A stretch of DNA of 64,000 nucleotides from Pavona decussata (taxonomy: Eukaryota). The notes under the pieces were generated by a model. The model searched no databases. It was not told where the DNA came from and saw only the letters and a list, made by a program, of their open reading frames with translations. Location of the stretch: the NCBI GenBank assembly GCA_977016875.1, contig CDRNST010000060.1, forward strand, positions 4,402,001-4,466,000, read 5' to 3'. This document shows positions 1,773 to 54,900 of this stretch, piece after piece (the stretch's first letter is position 1; each line of letters opens with the position of its first letter). A program made the position numbers and the translations under genes.

Positions 1773-4700
1773 CTACACCAAACCATAACATTTGAGCTTT
1801 CCTAATGTATGATAACCTTCTTCGCTCGAGTCATCTAAATCTCCCAGTCTGATTTGCGTCACAGGCAGAGCAGACTTGTCTGTCAGCAGACCGCTATCTG
1901 ATCTCCAACCACCGCCATAGTTATGACAGTTACACTTGTGACCACCGGAACAAGAGTTTGTTACTCCGCATGCGCACATCACGTTATGGCCTGTAGCTCC
2001 ACCCCAGTAGTTCATCCGGTTTCCATCACGTGACACCCACCAAGCGAAACTACCCTCAACAAACGCTACGCTCCCAGCGCACTCAAACTTGATAAACTGT
2101 TCACAGTTCTGTGACTTTCGAGTGAGTGCTGCTAGCTGAGCGGTACTGACTCCAGTGTATCTCACGTCTTTACGGTAACATCCTGCATAACCACATCCAG
2201 GAATGTTAGCAACGTGGGTTCTACTCTCACTGTCGTGACTGATTACCGTCACGCCAACTCCACCTTTGTCACTCATGTCACAATACACACGGAAGGGAGC
2301 CGCGCCTCCTTTGCCGTCAGGGTCAATCATATAATTACCTGAAGAGCTGCCACTGTTGCCTGATTTTATGCTGCTGCAGGACACTGGTTTGAGTACTTCA
2401 ATAACAGTAGTTGCCTTAATTGTTCGCCGATAATTTTTTGCCTCGCACGTGTAAGACCCAGCGTCACTTTTGGCCACTTTGCTGAGAAACAAAGTTCCGT
2501 TTGGATAAACAACATGATTTTGTGAAAGAGTTTTGCCGACTCTTTTCCAGACAGTTTCAATTGAGCCCTGTGCTTCACAATTCAGCATTACATTGCTTAA
2601 CTCTAATACAGCATCTTTCAAGGGAGGGGTGAGGGTAAATTTGAGCCTGTCAATCACCGCCAGTAGTGAAACTGCGGAATCCTGTCCAAGAAGATTCTTA
2701 GCTGAGCATGCGTACGTCCCACCATCTGCCTTTTTTACATTAAGGATAATCAAATTCCCTTCAATGACTGTGGTCTTCTCTTTCGGCACGTGGCCCAGTG
2801 CCTTTCGCCACGTGACCTTTGGTTTGGGTTGACCAGTAGCTTTGCACTGCAGGTTCACGTTTTCTCCCTCTTCAACTATGACCGACGAAGGCTTTTGAGT
2901 TATCTTGGCACCAACTAAAAGTCAACAAAGAAGAGCTATGAAAAAAAAGATTGTTTTCTTATCCTCTATATTGAATTGGAACTTTCATCATCATCATTTA
3001 TTCCTTTGCCTTACTAAAAAAAAGAAGAAATGATAGAATTTACAATAATGGCGAGGAGACCTCAAGAAACCACCAGGCTTATAAGAGAGGCCATCTCGAC
3101 TGTCATTAATAAATAGAAAGTGTGTGGTGCTGCGTAAGTGCGGCTTGGTCAATTCATGATTTTATAGATATAAACTGCAACATTTTTTTCTTGAAGGTGA
3201 AAAAACTAGATGAAGAAGTTATTGATATTGGGAGAGAATTTCAGACAGGCTTGGACATGAGGTTTAATTGGGGGAACCTAGACAAAGAGTTTTTTCCACA
3301 AGAACTTCCATTGTAATCTAGATCCAGTTCCATACGGAAAAAAATATTGAGGGAACCAAATTGATGGAAGTCTAGTCTGCAACTGACACTTCAAGGAACT
3401 TTATTTAGCTGTCAAGCAAAAACATTTGACCTGGGGGTGCTTTTTTATATGTCCAGTATTCGTTAACAGAAAAATTTAGCCATCACCGGCAGTTGCTGAT
3501 GAGCTTGACCTTTTCAGATTTTAGATTTGTTTTATTCATGTACTATTTCAATAGTTAACCACAAAAGGAAATTCCGATACATCACAAAAGTAACATAAAT
3601 ACAACATTAAATTACATAAATCATCAACGGTAAAATGTGCGCAGTGACCAAAGGAGCTTAGGCTTCTGAGTTGGTCACTGCCACGTGCGGCTAACTGGTG
3701 TATAACGTGCAACTAACTAAGTAGCACAAAACAAAAGACAAGAAAATTAAGAGTGCATAAAATGATACTACAATTTGTACCTAAAAAACAATTGAAATGA
3801 TAGTTAATAGTGAGGGCAGAGAAATCAAATACTCATTGCGTATTTAAAAGGTACAATTTGTATTGCTTGTAGAAGCTATTATATGGGAGTTTTTTTTAAA
3901 TTTAGAGGGAATTTTTTCCCAAATTTTAGACCCAGCATATGCAAAAGTGGCAGCTCCGTAATTATTCCTTATCCTCGGCTGATGAAAATTAAGGTTTGAT
4001 GCAAATCTGGTGTTGTAGCTATGAACTTCAGAGGCAAGAGTAAGAGTTCCTTTGAAAATCATTGGAGCGTTAGTAGTATTGTTAGTAATCTTATATGTGA
4101 AAGGGGCACCTTAAATTTGTAAATGTTTTCAAGTGTAAGAATACCTAAGAGATTTAAGTATGGCATAGCACTGTCCCTACTATAAATAAAGAAGATGCTA
4201 CGCACACAGTTATTCTGTTTAGTTTTAATTTTATGTAATCTGGTCTTACAACCACTGCCCCAGGTCTTAATACCATAAGTTAAATATGGATAAATGAAGG
4301 AGAAATACATGTCTTTAGACCGGAGTTTAATCAAACAAGACCGCGAATGTCAAAGACTATCATCTGTCAGAGCCATTTCATTCCCAGGGCCACCTGCTCT
4401 ACTGGTCACCAACAGAGAAGACAGAGGTCTCTGCGGACATCACTGGTGGTTCTAGCCTACACGTTGCCATACCCATCCACCACGGAGAAAGCATGGGGTG
4501 TGTACCACTAAGCGTAGGCTATGGTGGCTCGGGCCTGAAGTTTCCCTAAACCTTAGCAGGCTCAACCCCAGTTAACACCCGCGTGCAAATCTGAGATAAA
4601 ATCTCTCTAAACGAAAAGACGCACAGGATTACAAAATTCGCTGAGTATGCCGTAAAATTCCCTCCACACAAAAAGCCTTAACAAATCAGCTTCTTTAAAT

Positions 4701-6818
4701 TTTTAGTTAAGATCTGTTAAATTCCTCTATTTACCTTGAACAGTTAATGTGGCTGTTGATGCTTTTTTCCCAAGGATATTTTTTGCAACGCAAGTGTACA
4801 TTCCATCATCTTGTGACGTCACGTCTGTGATCATCAGGCCACCGCTTGATTGTACAACTCGTTTATCCGCGAGGAGACTGAAATTCTGTTTCAGCCACGT
4901 GACCTGAGGCTTTGGGTTTCCTTTAACCTCGCACTGAAATGAGGCTGCATCAGTCTGGTTGACCACTAAAGACACTAGAGGTGAGACAATAAAAGGGGCT
5001 GAGATGGATTCACCAGGATTGCCCTTGGGTCCTTGAGGGCCCTGGTCACCTTTAGGTCCTGGAGGTCCCTGGTCTCCTTGAGCACCTCTTGGTCCCCGTG
5101 GTCCCTGAGCCCCGGGCGGACCATGCTTGCCTGGGGGACCAGGCCTGCCTCGTTTTCCCCTGATACTTTTTGGGCAGTGCACCATGCAGGCCAGGCTGCT
5201 CAGAACAAGTTGAACTTCCTTCTTGATAGCTTCTCGAATGATGTTTTTACTGCCGTTTTTTTCCTTGTTGTCATTCCCCAGATGGCGTTTGTAACGAATC
5301 TGGATATCTGTGAGGATTAAACCATTTATTTATATTAAAGCATGACAGTTTGGTTTACATATCTTCTTTGCTACCTACCCCTGAACATATAGTGAAAGAA
5401 TTAAACTATTTGATATACAATTTCCTATGGAAAGGTAAAGACAAAGTAACTAGAGTATCTGCAATAAATAATTATGAGGGAGGTGGCCTCAAAATGGTTG
5501 ATATTGAAAGCATGATCAAATCTCTCCGCCTCTCCTGGCTGAAAAGAATCTTTGGTGATAATTCAGGCGTATGGAAAAGCTATTTAGAATATCTTCTAAA
5601 AGAAACAGGTGGTCTGGTTCTTTTTAATTGCAATTATAATATTAAAGACTTAAATATTAATTCTCAATTCTATGCAGAGTTATTGAAATGGTGGTCTGAG
5701 TTTCGCAAAGACAATGCAAATGATACTAACTGGCATTACTTTATCTGGAATAATCAAGAAATACGAATAAACAATAAACCAGTTTTCTATAAAAGGTACT
5801 TCAATAATGGGATTCGAACTGTGGGCGACTTACGCTTTGATCTTAATAATATCGACTCTTATGAATTACAGGCAAAATACATAGAGAAGACGAATTTTCT
5901 GGAATGGACTGGTCTACGCCACTCCATACCGCTCAATTTAAGAAATGCTAATTATAAACCGGATCCCATAGTCCTAAATCCATCCTTCAAAACTGACAGT
6001 GGTCTTTTCGATGTAACTAAAAAGAAATCTAAAGATTACTATTCTCTTTTTGTCCGTAAAAAGGCACGCTTCCCTAATCATGCGCAAAAACTAAAGTGTG
6101 AATTTAATTTATCTGATGAGGCGTTGAAAAAAGCTTTCTGTCTTCCCCATTCAGTTGCTTTTGAGCCATACGTTCAGGCCTTTCAGTTTAAGGTATTAAA
6201 CTCTATACTTTACACTAATTCAAAATTACATAAAATCGGCTATATTTCAGACAATCTGTGCTCTTTTTGCAAACGGGAATCAGAAACTATACAGCATCTC
6301 TTTTATAATTGTTCTTACTCAATTACTTTTTGGAAAAACTTTGAATTATATTACTTATCCCTGACAAAACAACAAATACATCTTGAATTGAGAGATATTT
6401 TAATCGGTGTTCTAACACCAGAATGCCCCTTACTAAATTACCTGTTACTTATAGGAAAAATTTATTTATGGGGGTGTAGAAGAAATAACGAACTTCCGAA
6501 TATAGGTGGTTACAAATTTAAAGTATCGTTAAAGTATGACACAGAGAAATTTATTTGTACGAAAAATAATACATTAGACATATTTAAAAAGAAATGGACA
6601 ATATTTAGACCTATTTAATATATATGACTTGTACGGGTGTGACTTTGAATTTTTTGTGAGTGAGTGCATGAGAGCATGAGATGAGTGAGTGAGTGTTGTG
6701 AATGGTGTGTTAGCGGGCCAGCGAGTGAGTAAGCTAATTGTAATATTGTACAAAGTGTAAGTGCGTAAGTACTGTCTAGTTTATTATTGTATGTAACTGT
6801 GTGTTTTCTTGCAAATAA

Positions 6819-6849
<31 letters not shown>

Positions 6850-8239
6850 GACAGTTTGGTCCGTAAGCGTAGGCCTTAAAGGCAATTGAAATCAGTGAAG
6901 ATGGTTGTTCTTAACGCTCTAATTGACATTGTGTTAAATGAACCATTAAAAACTGAGAAGCCCTTAAAATCCCGGGGGGGTTCTCCCTTATATGGGCTAT
7001 ATAGGTATGTGCAGCGCCAAAGGGTATGGTTTTTCGGCTGTTTTGGTACGGTCATAAAGAGGGTATCGATTTTAGCCACTTTGCCGCTATTTTGGTAATA
7101 AATAGGGTATAGATTTTTGCACTGTAGTCCTGGGTTCGTTTTTTTTTTTAGAAGAAGCTACTTCAGGTCATAAATAGGGTAGGGAAAATCGCAGATTTTG
7201 GTCATAAATAGGGTAAGGGTTTTGGGAAGCGGACCGCACACCCTTACCCAATTTTTTTTGGAGTACCCCCCCGGGCTTAAAATCCAATAGTTCACAAGGA
7301 AGTATATTTGCTTCTCAAGCAACGGGAACAATGGTACTCAAGAACTTCCTTTACAGCATTTAAGGAAACGTTTGAATTTGTAGTTGCAAGCTAACATCTT
7401 CATTAAACGAAACGGTCAGTGTTCCTTGAGGTTTTCACGTTTTCTCAAACGGTAATCTAGCGGGATGATTTTTTTATAAAACATAATTTAAGAAAGTTGT
7501 AAATGAAAATGAAAGCGATTTATTGAGGGGTCAAATAACCGCCATGCACGTGAGAGGGGTTTAGTTTGATTTGTATTTTTAGCAATCAGTAATGGGATAA
7601 ACTGCGACCCGTGAAAGACATTATTTGCTGTCAAGAGTCAAGTTTTTAATTGCATCAAAGCAATTACGATATTAAATGGCGGTAGCAAGACACCGATCAC
7701 AGAAACATTATCGGCAATTGCTCTGTAAGTGCGGCGTTATTTCATTTTTCTACACTATTTATAAGGAGTTGAAACTCCCAGTACTTCAGAAAAAAACTCT
7801 TGAGTATTATCGGGTGCGGCCGGAGTCTTATACTTGCGCACTAAGGTATTTTTGGACTGTTTGGCCATATCGTGTAAAGGAGACTGAAACGTTCGTAATA
7901 GAAACAGCCCGATCAGATGTCAGTGATTCTCCCTGCAATCCTCCCTTGAGTTAAAAGCAAAATATTGATTTTCTTAAATGCAACTGAATACTCACCATTT
8001 TCGGCCGAGTCGCCGTGCAAGAAGCGCTTCAACGAAGAATCCGCAGTCGTCTCGTCATGTGCAGTGTTTTGTGGCTCGACATTTTCTTGTCTTTGTTGAT
8101 TCAAGGCTTGAAGCATTTGTCGATGAGCGTGAAGTTCGATCTCGACGTGAATCAGTGCCACGAAACAAACACAAACGGAGACAAATATTGATGAAAACAT
8201 CACCGTATTGGAGACCGGGCGCGACTTTGATTTCTCCAT
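1773..8239 (-). CDS. Gene A1: type II TM collagen-3xIg protein with CASPR-type fibrinogen-like C-terminal domain (~652 aa, intact)
   Basis: Exons 8239-7996, 5307-4735, 2914-1773; all introns GT-AG, phase 1; 1959 nt open. Hydrophobic [29 protein letters not shown], 17 GXY triplets, Ig motifs (W..DxGxYxC), then [46 protein letters not shown] as in the CNTNAP/neurexin IV fibrinogen-like domain. Confidence 0.88.
2985..3248 (-). mobile_element. Short retroposon 3' remnant with AATAAA(TGA)n tail
   Basis: Insertion relative to A2/A3 (GGAACTT^..CTTGGAC); also present in A4 at ~47052-47314. Confidence 0.55.
3520..4312 (-). mobile_element. CR1/L2-like LINE 3' fragment in intron 2 of A1
   Basis: Post-RT motifs [27 protein letters not shown]; frameshifted; absent from A2/A3 introns. 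Ends approximate. Confidence 0.75.
5355..6849 (+). mobile_element. 5'-truncated L1/Tx1-clade LINE in intron 1 of A1
   Basis: Open ORF2 C-terminus (FLWKGK..GGLKMVD, zinc-knuckle [18 protein letters not shown]), AATAAA 6814-6819, poly(A) 6824-6849, 11-bp TSD GACAGTTTGGT (5344-5354 and 6850-6860); empty site in A3 near 30206. Confidence 0.92.
6971..7275. mobile_element. MITE with CCCGGGGGGGT(A/T)CTCC TIRs and 8-bp TSD
   Basis: 16-bp TIRs with one mismatch; TSD CTTAAAAT at 6963-6970 and 7276-7283; empty site in A3 at ~30373. Confidence 0.9.
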
Positions 8240-8470
8240 AATACAATCTTAAGATTGTAAAAACCAGGGAAGGCTTCCAGTTGAGATCTTCCCCGTTCAG
8301 TAAAAGCTGTGTTCAGCTGTGTGTCCAGTGGACGTCTCTTGTCAGTCCAGCTTCTTGATCCTCTTATCTGACCTTTCTTCCGCTATTCAATAGTGGCATT
8401 TTTCCAAAATCTCCGAGTAGGTCTTTTCCCCATTAGTCGTCTTATTTTTAACCTACAGGATTTCTAATAA

Positions 8471-8479
8471 TTCCGGGAA
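8471..8479. promoter_or_regulatory. Candidate STAT (GAS) site TTCCGGGAA ~230 bp upstream of each type-A ATG
   Basis: Exact match at 8471, 24211, 31555, 50814 and 56226; function not shown. Confidence 0.35.
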
Positions 8480-8685
8480 TAAAGACACAGGTCATGTCTA
8501 CAGTAAACTGTATATGTCCGAATTTATATTTTTGTTCGCGACTTAATTTGTTAGTTTTCTAACGTAATAAATGGAGCGAAAACGAAAGAGAACAATTTAA
8601 TTGGAGATATCCAACGAACGTCTTCAAGAATAGAACAACAACCTACTGGATGATACATGGCAAGACGCATGCGCGCATGAGTACT

Positions 8686-8808
8686 GACTAAGCCCATTGG
8701 TAGAACAATGCACTTGTATCCCGGAGATCAGGGTTAGAATACCTTTCAGACGTGCGTGATTATTTTTTCATGCTTCATTTTCGCTGCTGGTTAATTGTGT
8801 ACACAACT
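8686..8808 (+). mobile_element. Decayed tRNA-derived SINE (copies also at ~31770-31892 and ~56450-56572)
   Basis: A-box-like TAAGCCCATTGGTAGA and B-box-like GGGTTAGAATACC at tRNA spacing, followed by a T-rich body; too degenerate for a tRNA. Confidence 0.5.
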
Positions 8809-8994
8809 TTAGGTATTTCTTTCAATTAGTCCCCTTGTTACCCTTAATAGAGTAATGTAATATAAATTTTTATTTAAACCAACAAACCGGCCAACTACGC
8901 ATCTGTACGTAGACATATACAGGCGGATCGTTGTTGTATTCAATTATGAGAGAGTATTGGGACCTAAGCACTAGTGTTTCCATGTATCTGGAGA

Positions 8995-9169
8995 ATAGGC
9001 CATTTCCGAGTTGCTGTGAACCTCATTATGAAAGCGAGGCTAAGTGCAAAGCTTTTCATATGAAGATTAGTTTTGTTTGCATATGAATGAAAACTAATTT
9101 TCACAACAAAAACCTTGCACTTAGCCTTGCTTTCATAATGAGGTTCACAGCAACTCGGAAATGACCTAT
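8995..9169. mobile_element. Fold-back MITE
   Basis: Long inverted arms ATAGGCCATTTCCGAGTTGCTGTGAACCTCATTATGAAAGC...; absent from the homologous sites at ~165 and ~56770. Confidence 0.85.
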
Positions 9170-9323
9170 CAGATTTGATTCATTCATTTAGGGCTGTTCT
9201 AGTACTCTAAGCGATTAGTTAGTTTTACTGTAATTGGTTTCCGTTAATCCTGGTTCTGCTGTATAATTTGTAAATAACTTAATAATTATAATTAATGTAA
9301 TTTAACAGGGAAGAGCCACCCAT

Positions 9324-9454
9324 NNNNNNNNNNNNNNNNNNNNNNNNNNNNNNNNNNNNNNNNNNNNNNNNNNNNNNNNNNNNNNNNNNNNNNNNNNNNN
9401 NNNNNNNNNNNNNNNNNNNNNNNNNNNNNNNNNNNNNNNNNNNNNNNNNNNNNN
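9324..9454. other. Assembly gap
   Basis: Run of N. Confidence 1.
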
Positions 9455-10264
9455 ACACGTGACGAAATCTGAACCGCTTAAGTCATTTGTCGGCCGGTTT
9501 AAAATATGGAATAGTTTAAAACCTAATGCCCAAACATCCGTCCCCAGAATTTCCAAAATGTATAAACTTTTTTGTTTTGCTGCACCAGTTGCTCGTCGAA
9601 AACATCTTGCATTGTAAAAATTGACGACGTCACAAATGGCACGACTTGCATACCCCTAATAAGCCTCTGCCTATGACATTAAAAAGGCTATTCACGAGAT
9701 AAATAAATGTCTGGCCAAGTACTGATCTGCTCAGAGAAGGGTGAACACTTGTTTCCATATCTCAAACTGACCTTAGACATTGACTTAAAATTACTTTTAG
9801 TAAAACTTATTTCAAACTTTATAGTAAAAAAAGGAGAACTTCAGAAAAGTGTTCGCCTCGAACCCGAGTCGTTTGTTTTATTTCTTCTATCCATAACCAT
9901 TACACCAATGGGACTAGCTGACGAGAATTGTAACTTTTAACGTAGTATAGTAGCTACCCATCACAGTAAATGAAAGCTAACCGTTTTGAAATTAGCCGCT
10001 TAACCCTGAATACTGTACATCGGTGCTAAACCCTAAAATGGTGTTACTTGCCAGACTGGAGCTCAGTTCTCTGCTAAAAATATGGAGTTCTGTTCTCGTG
10101 TATGTCAGTGCTATGAAGATAAGGAATGCTTTATTGTGTAAACATCATAAGGTGTCCAAGGTCAGTTTGAGATATGGAACCGAGTGTCGAAATAATGGCC
10201 GGCCACAATTAGATCACGAGCGCATTGAAAGAATTCTTTCATTCATACATCTTTATCATGTGAT

Positions 10265-13200
10265 TTATGATAGCCTGATAAACACGTGCGGTGGATATGC
10301 CATATCAGTAGTAAAAGTAAATGGCCTTCGTTTCGTGTGATCGAGGCACACGTAGCACGAGTTCTTTCCTCCAGACCAGTACTCAATGGCAGTACAATCC
10401 GCACAGAGGTGTTTGCATTCCTGTGAAGTAGTGCCTCTTGAGATCAATTGCCGATTGCTGTGACCACACCATTGGGGTGTGTAGTGCAACCATACTAAAA
10501 AAAGAAAATAAACGTATTCAAAAAAATTGGCTGAGATAACTAAATATTATCACTAACTCACGCACGGAGTTTTGCTCGTACGCTATTGAAATGCCTTTAG
10601 TGTCAGTTTAACGGCAATTTTATGGGTATATCAACGAGAAACCACTTTCATTGTCCATTTTGTCCAAAAGTGTCGGTCTGATGAAACAAGTGAATTCTTT
10701 TTGTATTCTTGCCTGTCTAGTGGGCGTTACCAGGGAGGGAAGGGTGAGGATATTCACTCTGTTGAAACAACTGAAATTGTAATGCCGTAATTTCCAGAAA
10801 CAGACCCCCGCATCGTAGTAACACCCGTCCAAAAAAAGAGGAATAAACCAGTCTTACAAGAAATATTAAGACATACGTGTCACTTATAAACTGGTTTGAC
10901 TGTAACAAAAATAAAGTAAAAAAACAAACAAACAAACAAGCAAGCAACTACAACAACAACAACAAAAAGATAAAAAGAGGGAAAGAAAACTAGTGAGAAT
11001 GAGGCATACAGTACTGTAATTGGTCAAAAGTGGATTGTATACCAGACTTGATCACAAACGATGCCATCTTAACGGGAAACCTATTTGTAATGAGTAGACT
11101 GAAATCCCAACACAGTCCCCCCCCCCCCAGTCCCCCCCCCCCCCCCTCAATTTGAACACTTTCTTCATTCACAATAAACCCCTCCTCTTGTTTCTCTGTC
11201 ATGACACACTGGTGAGTGATGACCACCACGTCATTATTACGTCACCCCTTTTTTACTCGAGAGCACACCGTAGCAAGTCATGTCGCCTACAGTATCATAC
11301 AATTACCTTCTTTCTTGAGAACTTCAAGAACAGTTGTTGCTTCGATGGAACGATGAAAGTTTTTCGCAACGCATATATAAGACCCAGAATCGTTTTGGGA
11401 AACATTCTTTAAATGCAAAGTTCCATTTGGATAAAGAACATGATTTCGAGGGAGGATTTTACCGGCTCTTTTCCAAACAATCTCTTTTGTACCCTGAGCT
11501 GTACAATTCAGCATCACATTGTTATACTTTTTCGCAACAACTTTCAGGGGAGGGGTAATGATATATTTGAGCCTGTCAGTGACCATTACTATGGCGACGG
11601 CGGAGTCCTGTCCAAGGAGATTCTTAGCTGAGCATGCGTACGTCCCGCTGTCTGCTTTGGTTACATTCCACAAGGTAAGCTTCCCATCGATTGCTGCAGC
11701 TCTTGCTTTTGGCACGTGACTTAATGCTTTTCGCCACGTGATCTTTGGAGTTGGCTGACCAGTAGCTTTGCACTGCAGGCTCACATTTTGACCTTGTTCA
11801 ACAATGAGAGACGAAGGCTCTTGAATGATCACTGCGCCAACTGCAATTAAAATATTGACACCAAGTTAAATTGTCTCTAGGCAGGAGCGCGTCGGTCTGT
11901 TACCCAGAAAAGCCGATATCCCACATCCCTCGTGCTCGTCCGAGTTTTCACGCGCCCTCTTTGATCTAGCAGTTTGTAGGTTTGTCTCATATGTACTTAA
12001 AGTCAAATGGTTTTGTTCGCCACAAATATTTTAGCTGCAGCTCAGCGTGCAGTGTATTCAATCGGAATGCGGAAGGTTGCAGTTTCGATTGGTAATTTTT
12101 GGACATAAATTTGCACGTTAGTCATCATAATCACCATCGTCGTCTTCATCGTCAGCGTCATTAACATCATCATCGTCATCATAACCAATATCGTTATTAT
12201 TATTAGTTGTTATCATTATCGCTAAAGGTGATATAAATGTGTCATAAACAGCCACGCGTATTTGTTATGTAATCAAAGTCGTCACGCTTTTCGTTTTGTT
12301 TGTACAAAGAGAGCACATGACAACAACTTGATTTACTGGTTTTTGTAGGATATCAAATTTAGTGGGTTTATTTAGGGGCGTGTGATTTAACTCGAAAGGG
12401 GTTCTTTCTGTACGATATCAGAGTGGAATAAATCAGAATTTATACGAAAACGATTACGACTACTTCGTGTTTATAACAAAATGAGAGCCTACTAAAAATT
12501 AGATACTAAACTATTTGTAGCACACGCATACATTAGTCGTTGCATTTGGCCCACGCAAGCACCTGATGCTTTTCATTTCTCAAAATCATAGTTGACAACA
12601 GCTGTTCTGCGGAGGGTGGGGGGGGGGGGGGACGGGAATGCGACAGCTACTGATAGGCTATAACTAAATCCACCCAATGTTTCTTTCTGATACACGACAC
12701 GATAGTACCTGTCGTAAAAAGTAGAATATGCACTTTTATTCACCTTGAACAGTTAATGTGGCCGATGATGTCACAATTCCAAAAATATTTTTTGCTACAC
12801 ACGTGTACACTCCATCATCTTGTGACGTCACATCAGTCATCAACAGGCTACCACGTGACTGCACAACTCGTTTGTCTGCGAGGACAGTGGAGTTCTGTTT
12901 CATCCAAGTGACTTGAGGTTCTGGGTTTCCTTTAACGTGGCATTGAAACGAGGCTGCACCGGTTTCGTTTACCACTAAAGACACTGGAGGTGACAAAATA
13001 GAGGGGGCTGAGATCGATTCACCAGGATCGCCCTTCGGTCCTTGAGGGCCCTGGTCACCTTTAGGTCCGGGAGGTCCCTGGTCTCCTTGAGGACCCTTTG
13101 GCCCCTGTGGACCCTGAGGCCCAGGCGGACCATGCTTGCCTGGGGAACCAGGCCTACCTCGTCTTCCCCTGATACTTTTCGGGCAGTATACCGTGCAGGC

Positions 13201-32438: not shown

Positions 32439-32439
<1 letters not shown>

Positions 32440-40795: not shown

Positions 40796-41030
40796 AAATA
40801 CGCTTAGCTTTTGTGAGACCAGCAAGCTAGTCTCACCAGCTAGTTTACAGATATTTCACACTAAATGATTAAAATAACTAACACATATTAAAAAACATCA
40901 AATGGCATACTAGGTTAAGTTTAAATTTCTAATACAAATTAATCATCATACGTAAAACAAAAATTACAATAAAGAAATAAATGGATATAAAAAACTACAA
41001 TAATTCGCATTGTGTGAAAAGCTCACTCGA

Positions 41031-41480
41031 TCATAGTAGACCTGCCAGATCTAGTGTTCTGATACTGTTTTTAAAAGCCTTGTAAGTTTGAACTGTTATG
41101 CTTGAGTCAGGTAATGAGTTCCTGAGTTTTGGTGCCGTAAACGTCCACGATTTAAGGCCATAAGTTGTAGTGCTGGCCTTTGGTCGCTTTAAAATGTCAC
41201 TTCCTCTTAGATTGCATTTATTATTTCTAAGACCGATCAGTTCTTTTATGCATTTTGGTGCATGTTCATTATTGATTGCATTGAAAACTGTGCAAACTAT
41301 TTTTGCGAGGCGTTGATTCTCAAGTGATGGTAAACCTATTTTGTTGAGTAGTTCAGAGTAGGGCCTTTGTTTTTTGTTAAAGACAAAACGGAGGGCACGC
41401 TCATTAACTTTTTCTAGCTTAGCAATGGCACTTTTGTTGCTGAAATGCCATGTCTCTGAGCAGTAGTTAAAATGAGGGAT
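41031..41480 (-). mobile_element. CR1/L2-like LINE 3' fragment
   Basis: IPHFNYCSETWHF..KLEKVNERALRFV..YGLKS post-RT motifs; bordered by A20/(GA)n; absent from BCO copy 1. Confidence 0.75.
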
Positions 41481-41493
41481 GAAAAAAAAAAAA

Positions 41494-41524
<31 letters not shown>

Positions 41525-45832: not shown

Positions 45833-48800
45833 CTACGCCAAACCATAGCATTTGAACTTTCCTAATGTATGATAACCTTCTTCGTTTGAGTCATTAAAAT
45901 CTGCTAGTCTGATTTGCGTCACAGGCAGAGCAGACTTGTCTGTCAGCAGACCGCTGTCTGATCTCCAACCACCGGCACTGTTATGACAGTTACACCTCTT
46001 ACCATTGGAACAAGAGTTTGTTACTCCGCATGCGCACATATTACTAGATCCAGCAGCACCTCCCCAGTAGTTCATTTTTCTTCCGTCACGTGACACCCAC
46101 CAAGCAACCGCCTCTTCAACAAACGCTACGTCCCCAGTGCACTCAAACTTGATAAACTGTTCACAGTTCTGTGACACTCGAGTGAGTGCTGCTAGCTGAG
46201 AGGTGCTGACTCCAGTGTATCTCACGTCTTTACGGTAACATCCTGGATTATCATTGTTACATCCAGAAATGTCAGCAACATGGGTTCTACTCTCACTGTC
46301 GTGACTGATGACCGTCACGCCAACTCCACCTTTGTCACTCATGTCACAATACACACGGAAGGGAGTCACGCCTCCTTTGCCGTCAGGGTCAATCATATAA
46401 TTACCTGAAGAGCTTCCACTGTTGGCTGATTTTATGCTGCTGCAGGACACGGGTTTGAGTACTTCAATAACAGTAGTTGCCTTAATTGTTCGCCGATAAT
46501 TTTTTGCCTCGCACGTGTAAGACCCAGCGTCACTTTTGGCCACTTTGCTGAGAAACAAAGTTCCGTTTGGATAAACAACATGATTTTGTGAAAGAGTTTT
46601 GCCGACTCTTTTCCAGACAGTTTCAATTGAGCCCTGTGCTTCACAATTCAGCATTAGATTGCTAAACTCTGATACAGCATCTTTCAAGGGAGGGGTGAGG
46701 GTAAATTTGAGCCTGTCAATCACCGTCAGTAGTGCAACTGCGGACTCCTGTCCAAGAAGATTCTTAGCTGAGCATGCGTACGTCCCGCCATCTGCCTTTT
46801 TTACATTAAGGATAATCAAATTCCCTTCAATGACTGTGGTCTTCTCTTTCGGCACGTGGCCCAGTGCCTTTCGCCACGTCACCTTTGGTTTGGGTTGACC
46901 AGTAGCTTTGCACTGCAGATTCACGTTTTCTCCCTCTTCAACTATGACCGACGAAGGCTTTTGAGTTATCTTGGCACCAACTAAAAGTCAACAAAGAAGA
47001 GCTATGAAAAAAAAGATTGTTTTCTTATCCTCTATATTGAATTGGAACTTTCATCATCATCATTTATTTATTTGCCTTACTAAAAAAAAGAAGAAATGAT
47101 ATAATTTACAATAATGGCGAGGAGACCTCAAGAAACCACCAGGCTTATAAGAGAGGCCATCTCGACTGTCATTAATAAATAGAAAGTGTGTGGTGCTGCG
47201 TAAGTGCGGCTTGGTCAATTCATGATTTTATAGATAAAAACTGCAACATTTTTTTTAAAAAGGTGAAAAAACTAGATGAAGAAGTTATTGATATTGGGAG
47301 AGAATTTCAGACAGGCTTGGACATGACATGAGGTTTAATTGGGGGAACCTAGACAAAGAGTTTTTTCCACAAGAACTTCCATTGTAATCTAGATCCAGTT
47401 CCATACGGAAAAAAATATTGAGGGAACCAAATTGATGGAAGTCTAGCCTGCAACTGACACTTCAAGGAACTTTATTTAGCTGTCAAGCAAAAACATTTGA
47501 CCTGGGGGTGCTTTTCTATATGTCCAGTATTCGATAACAGAAAAATTTAGCCATCACCGGCAGTTGCTGATGAGCTTGACCTTTTCAGATTTTAGATTTG
47601 TTTTATTCATGTACTATTTCAATAGTTAACCACAAAAGAAAATTCCGATACATCACAAAAGTAACATAAATACAACATTAAATTACATAAATCATCAACG
47701 GTAAAATGTGCGCAGTGACCAAAGGAGCTTAGGCTTTCGAGTTGGTCACTGCTACGTGCGGCTAACGTTAACTGGTGTATAACGTGCAACTAACTAAGTA
47801 GCACAAAACAAAAGACAAGAAAATTAAGAGTGCATAAAATGATACTACAATTTGTACCTAAAAAACAATTGAAATGATAGTTAATAGTGAGGGCAGAGAA
47901 ATCAAATACTCATTGCGTATTTAAAAGGTACAATTTGTATTGCTTGTAGAAGCTATTATATGGGAGTTTTTTTTAAATTTAGAGGGAATTTTTTCCCAAA
48001 TTTTAGACCCAGCATATGCAAAAGTGGCAGCTCCGTAATTATTCCTTATCCTCGGCCGATGAAAATTAAGGTTTGATGCAAATCTGGTGTTGTAGCTATG
48101 AACTTCAGAGGCAAGAGTAAGAGTTCCTTTGAAAATCATAGAGACGTTAGTAGTATTGTTAGTAATTTTATATGTGAAAAGGGCCACCTTAAATTTGTAA
48201 ATGTTTTCAAGTGTAAGAATACCTAAGAGATTTAAGTATGGCATAGCACTGTCCCTACTATAAGTAAAGAAGATGCTACGCACACATTTATTCTGTTTAG
48301 TTTTAATCTTATGTAATCTGGTCTTACAACCACTGCCCCAGGTCTTAATACCATAAGTTAAATATGGATAAATGAAGGAGAAATACATGTCTTTAGATCG
48401 GAGTTTAATCAAACTAGACTGCGAATGTCAAAGACTATCATCTATCAGAGCCATTTCATTCCCAGCGCCACCTTCTCTACTGGTCATCGACAGAGAAGAC
48501 AGAGGTCTCTGCGGACATCACTGGTGGTTCTAGCCTACACGTTGTCATACCCATCCACCACGGAGAAAGCATGGGGTGTGTACCGCTAAGCGTAGGCTAT
48601 GGTGGCTCAGGCCTGAAGTTTCCCTAAACCTTAGCAGGCTCAACCCCAGTTAAAACCGGCGTGCAAATCTGAGATAAAATCTCTCTAAACGAAAAGACGC
48701 ACAGGATTACAAAATTCACTGAGGAGGCCGTAAAATTCCGTCCACACAAGAAGCCTTAACAAATCAGCCTCTTTAAATTTTTAGTTAAGATCTGTTAAAT

Positions 48801-50581
48801 TAATCTATTTACCTTGAACAGTTAACGTGGCTGTTGATGCCTTTTTCCCAAGGATATTTTTTGCAACACAAGTGTACATTCCACCATATTGTGACGTCAC
48901 GTCTGTAATCATAAGGCCACCGCTTGATTGCATAATTCGTTTATCCTCGAGGAGACTGGAATTCTGTTTCAGCCACGTGACCTGAGGTTTTGGGTTTCCT
49001 TTAACCTCGCACTGAAACGAGGCTGTACCAGTCTGGTTTACCACCAAAGACACTGGAGGTGACACAATAGAAGGGGCTGAGATGGATTCACCAGGATTGC
49101 CCTTGGGTCCTTGAGGACCCTGATCACCTTTAGGTCCGGGAGGTCCCTGATCTCCTTGAGCACCTCTTGGTCCCTGTGGTCCCTGAGGCCCGGGTGGACC
49201 ATGTTTGCCTGGGGGACCAGGCCTGCCTCGTCTTCCCCTGATTCTTTTCGGGCAGTGCACCATGCAGGCCAGGCTGCTCAGAACAAGTTGAACTTCCTTC
49301 TTGATAGCGTCTCGAATGATGTTTTCACTGGTGTTTTTTACCTTGTTATCATTCCCCAGCTGGCGTTTGTGACGAATCTGTATATCTGTGAGTGAAAAAA
49401 GCAGTTATTTATATATCAAGGCATGGCAGGCTGGTTATTAAGCCTGGGGCTGAAACGCTAAAAGGAAATTAGCACAAACTACAATACATTTGATTGAACC
49501 AGTAAAAACGTTGTGGCATTTTGTTATATTAAAGTAAACATAGATGTTTATCGTAATTTCTGCATTGCTATGCTTTCTTAAAATTGAAACTGAGGAGCCC
49601 TTATAATCCCAGTTACGACACGGGTTTACATAGCAGTACACAAGGAAGTATATTCGGTTCGCAAGCAGCTGAAACAGTGATACTCAAGAACTTCCTCTGT
49701 AGCATATAGGGAAACGTTTGAATTTGTGGGTGCAAGCTAAGATCTTCCTTAAACCAAAGAGTGTTCCTTGAAGTTTTTACGATAAGCGCAATAAAACGCT
49801 GACTAGTTGGATGAATCGAACGCAAGAGAAAAAATAAAGGAAAGCGAAAGGTATTTATACAGGGGTCCACTAAGCGCCACGCACGCGCGGTGAGAGACGT
49901 TTATTTAGGTTTGTATTTTTAGCAGTCAGCGATGGGATATAACGCGACTCATGAAAGAAATTATTTGCCCTCAAGAGTCAAGTTTTTAATTGCATAAAGC
50001 AAATACGATATTAAATGGCAGTAGCGAGAGACCGATCGCGGAAACATTATCGGCAATCGCCCTATAAGTGTGGCGTTATTTCATTTTTCTACACTATTTA
50101 TAAGGAGTTTTAACTCCCAGTACCTCAGAAAAAAACTCTTGAGTATTATCGGGTTCAGCCGGAGTCTTACACTTACGCATTAAGGTATTTTTGGACTGTT
50201 TGGCCGTATCGTGTAAAGGAGTGACTGAAACGTACGTAAGAGAAACAGCCTGATCAGATGTCAGTGATTCTCCCTTCAATCCTTCCTATGAATTAAAAGC
50301 GAAATCTTGACCTTCTAAACTGCAACAGTATACTCACCATTTTCCGAGTCGCCGTGCAAGAAGCCGCGCTTCAACAAAAAATCCGCAATCGTCTCGTTGT
50401 GTACCGTGTTTCGTGGCTCGACATTTTCATGTCTTTGTTGATTCAAGGCTTGAAGCATTTGTCGATGAGCGTGAAGTTCGATCTCGACGTGAATCAGTGC
50501 CACGAAACAAACAGCAACGGAGAAAAATATTGATGAAAACATCACCGTGTTGGAGACCGGGCGCGACTTTGATTTCTCCAT
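45833..50581 (-). CDS. Gene A4: type II TM collagen-3xIg-fibrinogen-like protein (~654 aa, intact)
   Basis: Exons 50581-50338, 49385-48813, 46980-45833; phase-1 GT-AG introns; RHKR; 17 GXY. Confidence 0.87.
47597..48392 (-). mobile_element. CR1/L2-like LINE fragment in intron 2 of A4 (same insertion as in A1)
   Basis: Near-identical to 3520-4312 at the same intronic site; ORF 47921-48412 is open here. Confidence 0.75.
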
Positions 50582-51979
50582 AATACAATCTTAAGACTGT
50601 AAAAAACAGGGAAGGCTTCCAGTTGAGATCTTCACTGTTCGGTAGAAGCTGTGTTCAGCTTTGTGTCAAGTGGACGTCTCTTGTCAGTCCAGCTTCTTGG
50701 TCCTCTTATTTGACCTTTCTTCCACTATTCAATAGTGGCATTTTTCCAAAATCTCCGAGGAAGTCTTTTTTCCATTAGTCGCCTTATTTTTTACCATGCA
50801 GGAATTCCATCAATTCCGGGAATAAAGACACAGGTCATGCCTACAATAAACTGTTTATGTCTGAGTTGATTTTTTTTTTTTGGCGACCTAATTTCTTAGT
50901 TTTCAAACCTTATAAATGGAACAAGAACTAACGAGAACAAATTTAATTGGAGACACATCCAACGAATATGTTCAAGAATGGAACAACAACCTACTGGATG
51001 ATACATGGTAAAACGCATACGCGCATATTAAACAGGGAGGCACAAGTATAGCAAAATTAAGCACACACAAAAGACTTTCTTAGTAAAGTGGTGAGGAAAG
51101 AATGGAGGAAATGTTGAAAGATTTGACAAAACATTTTTCAATTCTGCTGTTTTGACAAAACATCTTTTCGTGAAGAGTAATGCATCGATTTTCTTCCCAC
51201 CTTTCTCCCGGGTATACTTCTTCACCTCCGGCTCCCCATTTGAGCTCGTGCCCATTCCCCCCCTGCAGCCTCGGTATGCACTGAGGTGATCAAGACTATG
51301 CAATGATTATAATGACAGCTCGGAAAGATTTTTTAAATCCTTTTTTTGTTCTATCTTGACTTGAGCAATCCAAAATAGGCCGCTTCATGGACATAGTCTC
51401 TACACTGATCATGAGGTAATTATCTTTGGTACGAGTCTTGCAATTTTCCCTTATGCCACGCCTTGCTGACCGTGCGCCAGTGGCAGCGTATAAGGCCCTT
51501 TGCACTCTTCTCATTTCGTGTCCGCAAATTCTGCTTAAACATGCCATGCCGGATTAAACGGAATCATCTTCTTTTCTTTATAAGAGAACAGATTCCTTGT
51601 AACATAAAAAAATCAAAATTTCTGTCAACTGTTAGATTTAGAATAGTAATTTTAAGTCGACATAATTTCTGATTTTTGCGGATTTGGCTGTTTCAAATAA
51701 TAAAAAAAGCGTTTGTTTCGTCAGCAGGCTTAGAAAACTCAGAAAAGTGTAAAACGCGATCGGCGGGAAGTAATTTTTTTGCTATTACTTAGTCCATTAA
51801 AATGGTAGTAGTATTACAGTCTTACCAAGAGAGGACCTTCATCCTCTCTTGGTCCTACTCGTTTTTAGGCCGTAGCATCTGCTATTGTTTCTTGGGCTAG
51901 GTGCATTGTTTGTTCAGTAGTGTTCTCGTGAAGGATATCGAACCAGTCTTGTGAGATCTTACGAGAGCTGCTTCACCAG

Positions 51980-54900
51980 CTATGCCGAACCATAACATTT
52001 GAGCTTTTCTAATGTGTGATAACCTTCTTCGCCCGAGCCATTTAAATCTCCCAGTCTGATTTGCGTCACAGGCAGAGCAGACTTGTCTGTCAGCAGACCG
52101 CTGTCTGATCTCCAACCAATGCCATTGTTATGACAGTTACACTTGTAACCACCGGGACAAGAGTTTGTTACTCCGCATGCGCACATCTTGTGATAGCCTG
52201 TAGCTCCACCCCAGTAGTTCATCCGTGTTCCATCAAGTGACACCCACCAAGCGAAACTGTCCTCAATAAACGCTATGTCATTATTGCATTCAAACTTGAT
52301 AAACTGTTCACAGTTCTGTGACACTCGAGTGAGAGCTGCTAGCTGAGCGGTGCTGACTCCAGTGTATCTGACGTCTTTACTGTAACATCCTGCAGAACCA
52401 CATCCAGGAATGTTAGCAACATAAGTTCTACTCTCAGTGTCATGACTGATGACCGTCACGCCAACTCCACCTTTGTCACTCATGTCACAATACACACGGA
52501 AGGGAGTCACGCCTCCTTTGCCGTCAGGGTCAATCATATAATTACCAGACGAGCTTCCACTGTTGGCTGATTTTATGTTGCTGCAGGACACGAGTTTGAG
52601 TACTTCAACTACAGAAGTTGCCTTAATTGTTCGTCGATAATTTTTTGCCTCGCACGTGTAAGACCCAGCGTCACTTGTGGTCACTTTACTAAGAAGCAAA
52701 GTTTCGTTTGGATAAACAATATGATTTTGCGGAAGAGTTTTGCCGACTCTTTTCCAGACAGTCTCAATTGAGCCCTGTGCTTCACAATTCAGCATCAGAT
52801 TGCTAAACTCTGATACAGCATCTTTCAAGGGAGGGGTGAGGGTAAATTTCAGCCCATCAATCACCGTCAGTAGTGCGACGGCGGAGTCCTGTCCAAGAAG
52901 ATTCTTAGCTGAGCATACGTAAGCTCCGCCATCTGCTTTTGTTACACTGAGTATAGTCAAATTCCCTTCGCTCATTGCAGTGTTGTCTTTCGGCACGTGA
53001 CTTAACGTTTTACGCCACGTGACCATTGGTGTTGGCCAACCCGTAGCTTTGCATAGCATGCTCACGTTTTCCCCTTCTTCAACGATGACAGAGGAAGGCT
53101 TTTGAGTAATTTTTGCGCCAACTACAAGTAGATATACAACAGCTATGATTAGTCACGCCGAAAAGAACACGGGACCGGAGTTGTCAACAACAATTTTGAA
53201 TTTTTTTAATCCCAAACCAACCGATAAATTGGGGGAATATTTTCTCTTGTCAATCGTTCCGCCATAGTGGGTAGAGTCTGAAGCGTACAATTGAAAGTAA
53301 TCTTCAAGTAAAATTTGAGTCAGCCGTTAACATTTAGCCTGACGTGTTTAACCACATGCCAAGTATTATAACTGGAAATTTAGCAATAATTAAATGCAGT
53401 TGCTGGTTGACCTTTTACAATGGAGTTTGATCATGAATTTTCAACCGTATGTGCGTGAGTCTATCATCTGGTTAGAGCAAACTCTTTTCCAGAGTCCCCT
53501 TTCTACTAATGAGCAGCAAGAAGAAGCCGGAAAGCTCAGTGAACGAGATTCAGCTTTAAAATTCGAAAACTGTCCGCTACTCAATTTCGTACTCTAACCC
53601 TGCTCTTATCTGAAGTTCACGTAGACCTTCAAAGGCATATCGCCATTAATGTGCTAATCAAAGACCAAAACAAAATTCCAAAATACCACCACGTATAGCT
53701 ACAGAATTATGCAGGCTTCTATTTATATGCAAAATTCCAACATTCCATTCAGTACGAAGTTTTTACAAAACTAACTTCTTAACGTTTTTAAAGGATCCGA
53801 CTAATTAACATATTCACCTTGGACGTTTAACGTGGCCGATGATTTCCTTTCTCCAAGGATATTTTTTGCAACGCATGTGTATATCCCGCCATCTTGTGAC
53901 GTCACGTCTGTAATCATTAGGCCACCACTTGATTGTACAAATCGCTTGTCCGTGAGGAGACTGGAATTCTGTTTCAGCCACGTAACCTGAGGTTCTGGGT
54001 TTCCTTTAACCTCGCACTGGAACGAGGCTGCACCACTTTTGTTTACCACCATAGATACTGGAGGTGACACAATAGAAGGGGCTGAGATAGATTCACCAGG
54101 ATTGCCCTTGGGTCCTTGAGGGCCCTGATCACCTTTAGGTCCGGGTGGACCATGTTTACCTGGGGGACCAGGCCTGCCTCGTCTTCCCCTGATTCTTTTC
54201 GGGCAGTGCACCGTGCAGCCCAGGCTGCTCAGAACAAGTTGAACTTCCTTCTTGATAGCTTCTCGAATGATGTTTTCACTGGTGTTTTTTTCCTTGTTGT
54301 CATTCCCCAAATAGCGTTTGTGACGAATCTGGATACCTGTCAGTGAAAAAAGCAGTTATTTATACATCAAGGCATGACTGGCTGGTTATTTAGCTTGGGC
54401 CTGAAACGCTTAAAGGAAATTAGAGTTAGTGAAGATGGTTGTTCTTACAAATAGCTATAATTAAAATGTATTAATCGAACCAGTAAAAACAATATGGCAT
54501 TTTGTAATGTAAAAGTAAACACTGATATCTTTCGTTTTTTTTTTTGCATTGCTATGTTTTTAAAATTGACGCCGAAGAGCCTTTCAAATCCCAGTTACGA
54601 CCTGGGTGTAGATAACAGCTCACAAGGAAGTAAATTTTTGGGCTCGCAAGCTGAGTGAGCTGAAGCAATGATGCTCAAGGACTTCCTTTGTAGCATTTAA
54701 GGAAACGTGAATTTGTGGGTACGAGCTAAGATCTTCCTTAAACCAACGAGTGTTCCTTGAGGTTTTCACAAAGCGAAATAAAACGCTGATCTAGCGGGAT
54801 GGGTTGGTTTTTATAAAACAGAAAAAATGAACCAAATGTAAGAAAGACTTAGCTTGGGCCTGAAACGCTAAAAGGAAATTAGCACAAACTACTATACGGT

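Follow-up and report, generated by a model that had tools for sequence, protein, structure and literature searches.

Loop variation on a predicted COLFI-type head in a tandem family of candidate recognition receptors of a stony coral

A 64,000-nucleotide stretch of DNA (the window) from the stony coral Pavona decussata carries a tandem gene array that fits a large family of candidate recognition receptors; in the five copies analysed, the loops of the head change at about the neutral rate, and only a few codons bear signs of selection for change. Corals must discriminate symbionts, pathogens and neighbours without adaptive immunity, and the receptors responsible are largely unknown. The reading that we favour, with roughly an even chance of being right, is that these genes encode germline receptor candidates resembling the cnidarian ficolin-like proteins (CniFLs), with heads of COLFI/CASPR type whose loops vary through gene conversion combined with replacement at a near-neutral rate or above.

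Gene array and predicted protein

The window contains eight tandem paralogs, five of which are the 'A' copies with the head. All 24 motifs quoted in the initial annotation were located; they belong to five tandem paralogs (A1–A5) and read on the minus strand. The heads, and the five patches (P1–P5) to which that annotation had assigned the variation, occupy the following positions:

1776-2378, minus strand: A1 head, coding sequence, with its stop codon at 1773-1775; the exon that carries it also encodes Ig2-3 and extends up to 2858
P1 2178-2198, P2 2046-2081, P3 1977-1997, P4 1908-1928, P5 1824-1844, minus strand: A1 patches
20291-20896, minus strand: A2 head, pseudogene
P1 20693-20719, P2 20561-20596, P3 20492-20512, P4 20423-20443, P5 20339-20359, minus strand: A2 patches
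27614-28219, minus strand: A3 head
P1 28016-28039, P2 27884-27919, P3 27815-27835, P4 27746-27766, P5 27662-27682, minus strand: A3 patches
45836-46444, minus strand: A4 head, the copy used for the structure model
P1 46238-46264, P2 46106-46141, P3 46037-46057, P4 45968-45988, P5 45884-45904, minus strand: A4 patches
51983-52585, minus strand: A5 head
P1 52385-52405, P2 52253-52288, P3 52184-52204, P4 52115-52135, P5 52031-52051, minus strand: A5 patches

A2 is a pseudogene in the present assembly, with two in-frame stops: a TGA at 20897-20899, at the first cysteine of the head, and another at 21215-21217, in Ig2.

Each of the eight genes is predicted to encode a type II membrane protein in which a short segment of collagen triple helix is combined with three Ig domains; in the A copies, a C-terminal head of ~200 residues follows. 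The corresponding exons are:

45836-46980, minus strand: last exon of A4, with Ig2, Ig3 and the head (spliced contig; Pfam I-set/Ig_3, E 1e-24)
48813-49263, minus strand: A4 exon with a collagen G-X-Y run (~17 triplets) and Ig1 (Pfam on a paralog and splice joint)
50279-50584, minus strand: N-terminal exon of A4 (tblastn and translations)
7955-8242 (A1), 23686-23982 (A2), 31042-31332 (A3) and 55700-55993 (A5), minus strand: equivalents of the N-terminal exon

These three exon types were detected by tblastn in all eight genes. One intron is backed by a spliced contig (A4, run X5), in which 48813 is joined to 46980, with 1832 bases skipped and GT..AG ends on the minus strand. In A1, the exon at 4727-5185, paralogous to the collagen/Ig1 exon of A4, gave E-values of 7e-11 for Pfam Collagen and 6e-21 for I-set; over the gene as a whole, the Collagen and Ig matches are spread over separate exons, each searched singly. 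The N-terminal exon of A4 encodes a short cytoplasmic tail followed by ~19 hydrophobic residues, a putative type II anchor, and then by a charged helical stretch.

The copies, or their mosaic patches, could in principle be products of a wrongly assembled repeat array, with collapsed haplotypes or chimeric joins at N gaps. The span has two such gaps (9324-9454 and 40621-40795), the paralogs are 80-91% identical, and contigs of other samples differ from the assembly toward other paralogs (for example, K149Q/R150K/H154R/A157G, giving a U1-like sequence). However, neither gap touches the five head exons, and both are outside every codon alignment used. On both sides of the first, the sequence is collinear with that of the paralogous B2/A3 interval (8316-9322 with 31400-32420, and 9455-10542 with 32504-33662), and the second lies within an insertion of ~1.2 kb, in an intron of a plus-strand RPE65-like gene. 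Moreover, introns and flanks are diverged and particular to each copy, A4 is matched without differences over 45507-45935 and 46010-46167 by contigs from an independent run, and the same pattern recurs in more than 100 copies on other contigs. An assembly artefact is hardly credible.

Fold of the head

The AF2 model of the A4 head has a pLDDT of 92.3, and procollagen I/III C-propeptides take the first 17 places among its Foldseek matches (E 7e-10 to 2e-7). By VIA-align, residues 1-200 of the model superpose on residues 41-246 of chain 5k31_A (Z 15.3, rmsd 3.7, 179 residues aligned), the next match reaching Z 6.7. At the sequence level, Pfam COLFI (PF01410) scored above its gathering score of 26.2 bits in the tested copies (29.5, 36.7 and 37.7 bits, the best match covering profile positions 33-223 of 233), and it was found at E <= 0.01 in 43 of 46 family heads. 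The Atlas cluster 'contactin-associated protein-like 5' matched with TM 0.88 by query over 194 residues (rmsd 1.8, predicted against predicted models), and coral relatives carry the NCBI name 'contactin-associated protein 1-like'. These models point to a CNTNAP/CASPR-type 'fibrinogen-like' domain with a predicted COLFI base and petal fold.

A canonical fibrinogen-related domain (PF00147) was rejected. Fibrinogen_C reached 19-20.7 bits against a cut-off of 22, over residues 7-52 only, and this partial match (profile positions 10-52 of 221) was found at E <= 0.01 in 18 of the 46 family heads. The three-subdomain FReD fold with its P subdomain was discarded as well: Foldseek against FReDs gave E >= 3e-3 and TM ~0.25 over 103-140 columns, and the VIA-align scores for FGL1 (Z 5.4), H-ficolin (Z 4.8) and fibrinogen beta (Z 4.6) are at the level of unrelated beta-sandwiches. 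With a COLFI fold, the head deserves the earlier label 'fibrinogen-like' only as the term is used for CASPR. The claimed replacement of CNCD, a putatively CASPR-type motif, by CNC followed by H, Y or R was confirmed within the coral family: it is seen in the five window copies, whereas 34 of 46 coral family heads have CNCD.

The near-complete structural match relates the head to CNTNAP/CASPR and neurexin IV. CNTNAPs, however, are built differently: they are neurexin-like, of type I, carry discoidin, laminin-G and EGF domains with a single fibrinogen-like domain per protein, and are not known to form tandem variable-loop repertoires. The window copies depart from the CNCD consensus of the coral family. 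With the fibrillar procollagen C-propeptide (PF01410; PDB 5k31, 4ae2) the head shares the fold from Cys41 to the C terminus, the base motif, the Cys41-Cys73 pair and a collagen segment in the same gene. In contrast to that propeptide, it begins at the Cys41 equivalent, straight after Ig3, without the stalk coiled coil (residues 8-29); the positions of the inter-chain disulfide Cys47-Cys64 are not Cys; the chordate chain-recognition insert is absent; and the head does not adjoin the triple helix.

A COLFI-type head might nucleate trimers, with the patches setting which paralogs co-assemble rather than contacting an external ligand. The fold itself is compatible with this proposal, as are the base region (Y-x-I-D-P-D-G ... 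F-x-V-x-C-D-M), near-invariant across the family, and the presence in the same genes of a collagen segment, for which trimerisation is obligatory. Chain choice in procollagens is set by a discontinuous, variable sequence within this domain (PMC5353611). However, the variable part of the coral head is not the chain-recognition sequence: the homologous stretch (YTGVST-QL...SQN) shows conservation from paralog to paralog, without the 6-residue insert of chordates, and P1 aligns to CPI 109-117, in a variable region ahead of that sequence. An external petal loop in that CPI region has no role in inter-chain contacts (PMC5353611). The missing stalk and inter-chain disulfide, together with the three Ig domains that separate the head from the triple helix, also argue against a chain-selection code, which we consider improbable.

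Loop variation, recombination and selection

Of the 203 head columns, 56 vary in the five-copy comparison. They divide evenly between the patches (28 of 42 columns) and the remainder of the head (28 of 161). Consecutive variable columns are at most two positions apart in a share of 0.655, versus 0.477 for random placement (p=0.0003). The initial annotation had described a nearly identical framework with substitutions and indels concentrated in the patches. The clustering bears this out in part, but 17% of the framework columns vary, the heads are 80-91% identical, half of the variable columns fall outside the patches, and the indels of the five copies are found only in P1. The proposed CDR-like layout was upheld, the patches being DSSP coil (surface loops connecting the strands) in the confident A4 model. 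Four of the five patches also rank as the most variable loops in clades of the family that expanded independently, less strictly in one. In other clades, 17 (p=2e-8) and 11 (p=0.004) of the top 25 entropy columns are within the patches, P3 not being variable in the former; entropy at the patch columns is high in clades c162 and c486.

Signs of recombination are strong. The PHI test gave p <= 0.0005, the Ig tree and the head tree disagree, and the GARD-like check that had been suggested put one breakpoint at joint column 108 and another at 145, with successive AICc decreases of 115 and 25. The features concerned, together with the codons flagged by site models, are:

2371-4060, minus strand: A1/A4 conversion tract (A4 side ~46440-48140), from 100-base windows
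46037-46141, minus strand: P2-P3 cassette in A4, head residues 102-136, from breakpoints, dS and omega
46253-46255 (residue 64), 46133-46135 (residue 104) and 45998-46000 (residue 149), minus strand: A4 codons flagged by site models

Between A1 and A4, the intron and Ig2-3 are 99-100% identical; 100-base windows reach 97-100% there, 72-96% in the head and 46-85% in the 3' flank, identity falling at the Ig3/head border. Along the head dS is uneven. P2 and P3 form an old two-lineage cassette, bounded by recombination breakpoints and shuffled by gene conversion, with a dS of 0.36-0.76 versus ~0.1 in the flanking head framework. The combination of this very high dS with an omega of ~0.5 indicates old, neutral-looking divergence. 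P1 (omega 1.45) and P4 (omega 2.56) carry recent replacements, with low dS and high dN, and residue 149 also has recent replacements. The patches are thus mixed in kind.

Diversifying selection, as originally suggested, was recovered only in part. The framework is under purifying selection (omega ~0.3, range 0.24-0.46), and the patches taken as blocks do not exceed a dN/dS of 1, the outcome that the initial annotation had named as counting against its own suggestion. By NG86, the five copies have 1.07, and a set of five other paralogs 0.65; maximum-likelihood partitioning gave 1.05 (not significant), and patch omega was 0.81 in seven paralogs outside the initial set. For the window clade, hot columns defined from other clades yielded 0.94-1.16 (not significant), and unbiased patch estimates ranged from 0.8 to 1.3, not different from 1. 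In our own implementation of M1a and M2a alone, the naive LRT of 64 for a class of codons above 1 fell to 10.6 when synonymous-rate variation was allowed and, when three segment trees were used, to 9.7 (p=0.008), with 2.7% of sites at an omega of 6.5. After these controls the site-class test gave p 0.005-0.008 in the window clade, a result that rests on ~3-6 codons and belongs to a kind of test that residual recombination can inflate.

The signal differed among clades. In c162 the LRT was 22.6-28.7, cross-validated hot columns had an omega of 2.0-2.3 (p <= 5e-5), and the homologous loops had an omega of ~2 (p=5e-6 to 1e-5), which holds under a breakpoint model; synonymous rates were alike in hot and cold columns (a = 0.98 versus 1.00; p=5e-6 for omega). 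Hot columns of c86 had an omega of 1.49 (p=0.025). In c486, omega was <=1, with no positive class.

Much of this would be expected if the patches were simply tolerant loops drifting neutrally on a scaffold kept alike by purifying selection and gene conversion. Such drift agrees with a patch omega of ~1 in the window clade and <=1 in c486, with the collapse of the naive LRT to ~10, with the strong recombination (PHI, breakpoints) and the divergence of P2 and P3, and with the decay already under way in A2. It does not account for the omega of ~2 at independently defined hot columns of c162, at equal synonymous rates, nor for the positive class that remains in the window clade or the pairing of low dS with high dN in P1 and P4. 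In addition, the patch average of ~1 includes invariant Gly and Cys, and some codons must therefore be above 1. We hold purely neutral change to be possible, though on balance doubtful.

Candidate receptors and related systems

In the receptor reading, gene conversion and recombination, acting between distant as well as tandem paralogs, would homogenise the scaffold and would also reshuffle the old, deeply diverged P2-P3 cassette with its two lineages. Recent replacements and small in-frame indels would build up in P1, P4, P5 and around residue 149, at a rate at or modestly above neutral, with the scaffold held by purifying selection (omega ~0.3). The collagen segment would trimerise, three heads would be displayed on an Ig stalk, and the variable loops would determine the binding partner of each paralog, so that the family would amount to a germline repertoire of recognition receptors of CniFL-like kind. 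A bolder proposal is that stony corals possess hundreds of germline recognition receptors on a COLFI/CNTNAP-type head, not one of ficolin type, with combinatorial loop cassettes such as the P2-P3 block staying distinct and being recombined by gene conversion on a homogenised scaffold, under diversifying selection. This we judge rather unlikely; if true, the combinatorial loop diversity would be an innate counterpart of conversion-based antibody diversification.

The genome contains at least 150 heads (150 scored matches among 324 candidates), in several architectures, and 2734 database proteins match at E <= 1e-3. A coral family of this size, loosely named "fibrinogen-like", "contactin-associated protein-like" or "collagen alpha chain", shares one COLFI/CNTNAP-type head, its variation focused on a few loops that recur in clades of separate expansion. 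Rather than uniform positive selection, the evolutionary signal combines gene conversion, old cassettes and a small number of fast codons, and the roughly six-fold inflation of the naive LRT is a caution for dN/dS analyses of recombining tandem families. The specific loops identified are targets for binding work.

Like the coral genes, snail FREPs and ficolins are tandem multigene families with localised variation and conversion-like mosaicism, and in FREPs Ig domains precede a globular head. By contrast with the coral head, their heads are true FReDs, in which the P subdomain binds acetylated ligands; the coral head matches FReDs at background level only (Z 4.6-5.4, TM ~0.25), and somatic diversification is not indicated for it.

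CniFLs are defined by Pfam Collagen, Ig and Fibrinogen domains, most of them with a TM domain and three Ig, and have been proposed as pattern-recognition receptors, with 1-7 copies in sea anemones (PMC5094078). Compared by this published definition, the coral proteins come from the same phylum and resemble CniFLs in their N-terminal membrane anchor (putative here), collagen segment, three Ig domains and C-terminal globular head. The published head is PF00147, whereas the present heads pass the COLFI cut-off and have a sub-threshold Fibrinogen_C match (residues ~1-45); the numbers also differ, at 1-7 copies in sea anemones versus at least 150 heads in the present coral genome. Some database relatives (P0001, P0034, P0096) carry a precomputed PF00147 match, and published CniFLs may therefore include the present head type.

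Architecture and content of the receptor array

The feature is real and constitutes a diversified tandem receptor family. Eight minus-strand genes were recovered by tblastn with the exons of A4, all searches being run with single exons, by reference and one by one. Five of them, A1–A5, carry the variable C-terminal head of ∼200 residues; the three related genes, B1–B3, lack it in their Ig exon. Each of the eight has an N-terminal exon encoding a short tail plus a ∼19-residue hydrophobic segment, followed by an exon with ∼17 G-X-Y triplets and Ig1 (Pfam Collagen and I-set). The third exon encodes Ig2–Ig3 (Pfam I-set) and, in the A copies, the head. In public run X5, a contig joins position 48813 to 46980, skipping 1832 bases with GT..AG ends on the minus strand; the intron is therefore confirmed and a spliced transcript exists. 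Within this A4 intron, the stretches 47072–47333 and 47596–47988 are dispersed repeats, as judged from a public-run contig depth in the thousands.

Features of the array, in window positions
1776-2378, minus strand, A1 head, open frame
20291-20896, minus strand, A2 head, open frame
27614-28219, minus strand, A3 head, open frame
45836-46444, minus strand, A4 head, open frame
51983-52585, minus strand, A5 head, open frame
11314-14312, 35346-38322 and 58814-61711, minus strand, B-type paralogs with the TM-collagen-Ig1-3 build, Ig2-3 frame terminating in KKEGNCMIL and a stop, without COLFI-type head
15729-18265, 24440-25003 and 39726-42670, plus strand, RPE65/carotenoid-oxygenase-like genes (PF03055, E 1e-40)
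5350-6618 (plus strand), 41031-41537 (minus) and 47921-48412 (minus), intronic retroelement fragments, including one in A1 intron 1 with a zf-RVT open frame

The RPE65-like genes, encoded on the strand opposite to the receptor genes, alternate with these and were duplicated jointly with them; the copy at 24440-25003 appears partial.

The five minus-strand open frames of the window contain all 24 peptide strings quoted in the initial annotation. The assembly gaps (9324-9454 and 40621-40795) were left as N without filling and lie outside all head exons and all alignments used. On both sides of the first, the sequence runs collinear with the B2/A3 paralogous interval. The second sits in an intron of an opposite-strand RPE65-like gene, within an insertion of ∼1.2 kb. 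A2 as assembled is a pseudogene: its first head cysteine is replaced by TGA (20897-20899) and a second stop occurs in Ig2 (21215-21217). The remaining A2 gene (20291-23982, minus strand), N-terminal and collagen exons included, still aligns at ∼90%.

The five heads had been described as invariant outside five patches, P1–P5. The patches themselves stand, since variable columns (56 of 203 aligned) cluster more than expected from random placement (p=0.0003), being split evenly between the 42 patch columns and the 161 remaining ones. The invariance does not: 17% of framework columns vary, and pairwise identity is 80–91%. Likewise, the proposed concentration of indels in the patches holds for P1, the sole indel site among the five copies, but not for P2–P5.

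The head has a COLFI/CNTNAP-type fold

The AlphaFold model of the head, for which 46 family members were used, has high confidence (pLDDT 92.3). The top ranks of a Foldseek search were occupied by 17 chains of procollagen I/III C-propeptides (E 7e-10 to 2e-7), with fibrinogen-related domains (FReD) ranking below (E ≥ 3e-3, TM ∼0.25, 103–140 columns covered). An independent all-against-representatives structure alignment placed 5k31_A first (Z 15.3 over 179 residues, chain 41–246); the next matches were unrelated beta-sandwiches with Z ≤ 6.7, FGL1, H-ficolin and fibrinogen beta being among them at Z 4.6–5.4. At the sequence level, the tested copies scored above the cut-off of Pfam COLFI (PF01410, the fibrillar procollagen C-propeptide domain), which reached E ≤ 0.01 in 43 of the 46 heads, while Fibrinogen_C stayed below its cut-off, with a match confined to the first ∼45 head residues. 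The Foldseek ranking, the structure-alignment Z scores and the sub-cut-off Fibrinogen_C match together rule out a canonical FReD.

The Atlas fold search retrieved a chordate cluster named "contactin-associated protein-like 5" (TM 0.88 over 194 residues), and NCBI labels the coral relatives "contactin-associated protein 1-like". The label "CASPR-type" (after the contactin-associated proteins) given to the head in the initial annotation is apt because of this match and these names, but the COLFI fold excludes its reading as a ficolin-type FReD.

A profile alignment of the head with 5k31, using the residue numbering of PMC5353611, places the head start at the equivalent of Cys41 and indicates that the Cys41–Cys73 pair and the Y-x-I-D-P-x-G base motif are retained. 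Unlike the procollagen C-propeptide, the head has neither the stalk (residues 8–29) nor the inter-chain cysteines Cys47 and Cys64, and its chain-recognition stretch is without the six residues inserted in chordates. The CNCD-K-N-D stretch has been lost in the window's clade.

The collagen segment suggests that the proteins are trimeric. If multigene recognition receptors are a guide, the loops may set ligand specificity. Alternatively, the variable loops could form a code for trimer assembly, as in procollagen chain selection; this explanation is weakened because the stretch homologous to the chain-recognition sequence is conserved in these heads and P1 aligns within the variable region preceding it, where procollagen has an external loop that takes no part in the trimer interface (PMC5353611).

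The genes share the build of the cnidarian ficolin-like proteins (CniFL), a name reportedly first used in the Aiptasia genome paper. CniFL combine Collagen, Ig and Fibrinogen domains, the majority having three Ig domains as well as a TM domain (PMC5094078), and the entire architecture of the window genes is identical save for the Pfam family of the head. This architecture, as CniFL, and the automatic annotation of relatives as contactin-associated protein-like were thus known already. In the literature, we found no description of the loop-focused variation, of the COLFI nature of the head or of the scale of the family in stony corals, and no mention of collagen, fibrinogen or ficolin in the papers examined on coral gene-family expansion. 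The search for COLFI/PF01410 in corals yielded only one table row, reporting a PF01410 orthogroup with a dN/dS of 2.75 in Montipora/Acropora (PMC9145168).

Recurrence of the loops and recombination within the family

The head is widespread in the genome, with at least 150 scored matches among 324 candidates on many contigs, where it is linked to Ig pairs, linked to EGF modules or alone in an exon. The named relatives that match best come from Oculina, Porites, Orbicella and Montipora, which marks the genome as that of a stony coral. Further head arrays lie on the following contigs:
C162, 1.62-2.09 Mb
C86, 0.96-1.98 Mb
C486, 0.24-1.05 Mb
C404, C331, C7 and C93

Three further clades (c162, c486 and c86, 20–23 heads each) were compared with the close paralogs of the window's clade (n=12: the five window copies, another five from their contig and two outgroups). 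Entropy peaks in c162 and c486 coincide with P1, P2, P4 and P5, whereas of these two clades only c486 varies at P3. The 25 columns of highest entropy fall inside the patches in 17 cases in c162 (p=2e-8) and 11 in c486 (p=0.004), and indels in these clades are also located at the P1, P2 and P5 loops. In the head model, each of the five patches is coil, P2 beginning at a strand end; in A4 head numbering they cover residues 61–69 (P1), 102–113 (P2), 130–136 (P3), 153–159 (P4) and 181–187 (P5). The loops are thus real and recurrent across clades.

Recombination is pervasive. The Ig and head portions of one exon give conflicting trees. A1 and A4 are 99–100% identical over the intron and Ig2-3 (A1 ∼4060-2371; A4 46440-48140), and their identity drops to 72–96% in the head and lower still in the 3′ flank; this tract is the product of gene conversion or recombination, ending at the Ig3/head domain boundary. 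Within the head, the PHI test was significant (p ≤ 0.0005), and a GARD-like scan located one breakpoint within P2 and another where P3 ends (AICc falling by 115, then 25). In the tree of head segment 1, D1 clusters with A4.

The patches differ in kind. Synonymous divergence is ∼0.1 over most of the head framework and 0.36–0.76 over P2, P3 and the conserved intervening codons (omega ∼0.5), a region made up of two deep lineages: (A2, A3, A4, U1, U2) versus (A1, A5, D1–3, outgroups). In contrast to these old lineages, P1 (dS 0.16, dN 0.23) and P4 (dS 0.09, dN 0.22) have a young background on which replacements arose recently; P5 lies near 1. The scaffold dS of ∼0.1 is also four-fold lower than that of the Ig portion of the same exon (0.42), so that the scaffold is the more homogenised of the two, a difference that holds even between sub-clusters 0.8 Mb apart (12-paralog alignment columns 215–316, A4 46142-46444, versus 34–208, A4 46445-46969).

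Selection on scaffold and loops

For the patches, Nei–Gojobori dN/dS came to 1.07 among the five window copies, to 0.65 among five other paralogs and to 0.80 when the ten were pooled, against 0.24–0.34 for the framework. Because multi-step codon paths may inflate the patch dS, it was rechecked by maximum-likelihood (ML) partitions and same-amino-acid codons. With synonymous and nonsynonymous rates left free, the ML partition gave an omega of 1.05 for the patches, not different from 1, and 0.32 for the framework; sequences outside the set used in the initial annotation gave a patch value of 0.81. Hot columns were then defined from other clades only, which avoids choosing sites by their own variability. 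Their omega was 0.94–1.16 in the window's clade (not significant), 0.64–1.03 in c486, 1.49 in c86 (p=0.025) and 2.0–2.3 in c162 (p 5e-6 to 5e-5), where synonymous rates were equal in hot and cold columns. The scaffold is therefore under purifying selection, while the loops of the window's clade evolve at about the neutral rate, with a few codons faster.

Site-class tests (M1a/M2a) used our own GY94 implementation. The plain comparison of M2a with M1a in the window's clade (LRT 64; 13 sites with posterior >0.8) was discarded as inflated, because synonymous-rate variation among sites improves the null M1a by 43 lnL units; allowing for it reduced the LRT to 10.6 (p=0.005). Three segment-specific trees gave an LRT of 9.7 (p=0.008), with an omega of 6.5 on 2.7% of sites. 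Codons with posterior >0.9 in the rate-controlled single-tree model were A4 head residues 64 (P1), 104 (P2) and 149 (between P3 and P4).

Contigs from public runs, the sole material of the allelic comparison, differ by 11 nonsynonymous versus 6 synonymous changes in the A4 head and by 1 versus 3 in Ig2-3, with several combinations that reproduce other paralogs, so that these differences may reflect paralog cross-mapping rather than alleles and were given no weight as evidence.

Site-class tests in c486 and c86 were not significant. Clade c162 is under clear positive selection (LRT 28.7; 22.6 with a breakpoint, p=1e-5). At the homologous loops, the signal of positive selection is strongest in the array on C162. 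The diversifying selection proposed for the patches is only partly supported for the window's copies: it is not seen in the patches as blocks (omega ∼1 in the window's clade) but is supported at a few codons (p=0.005–0.008).
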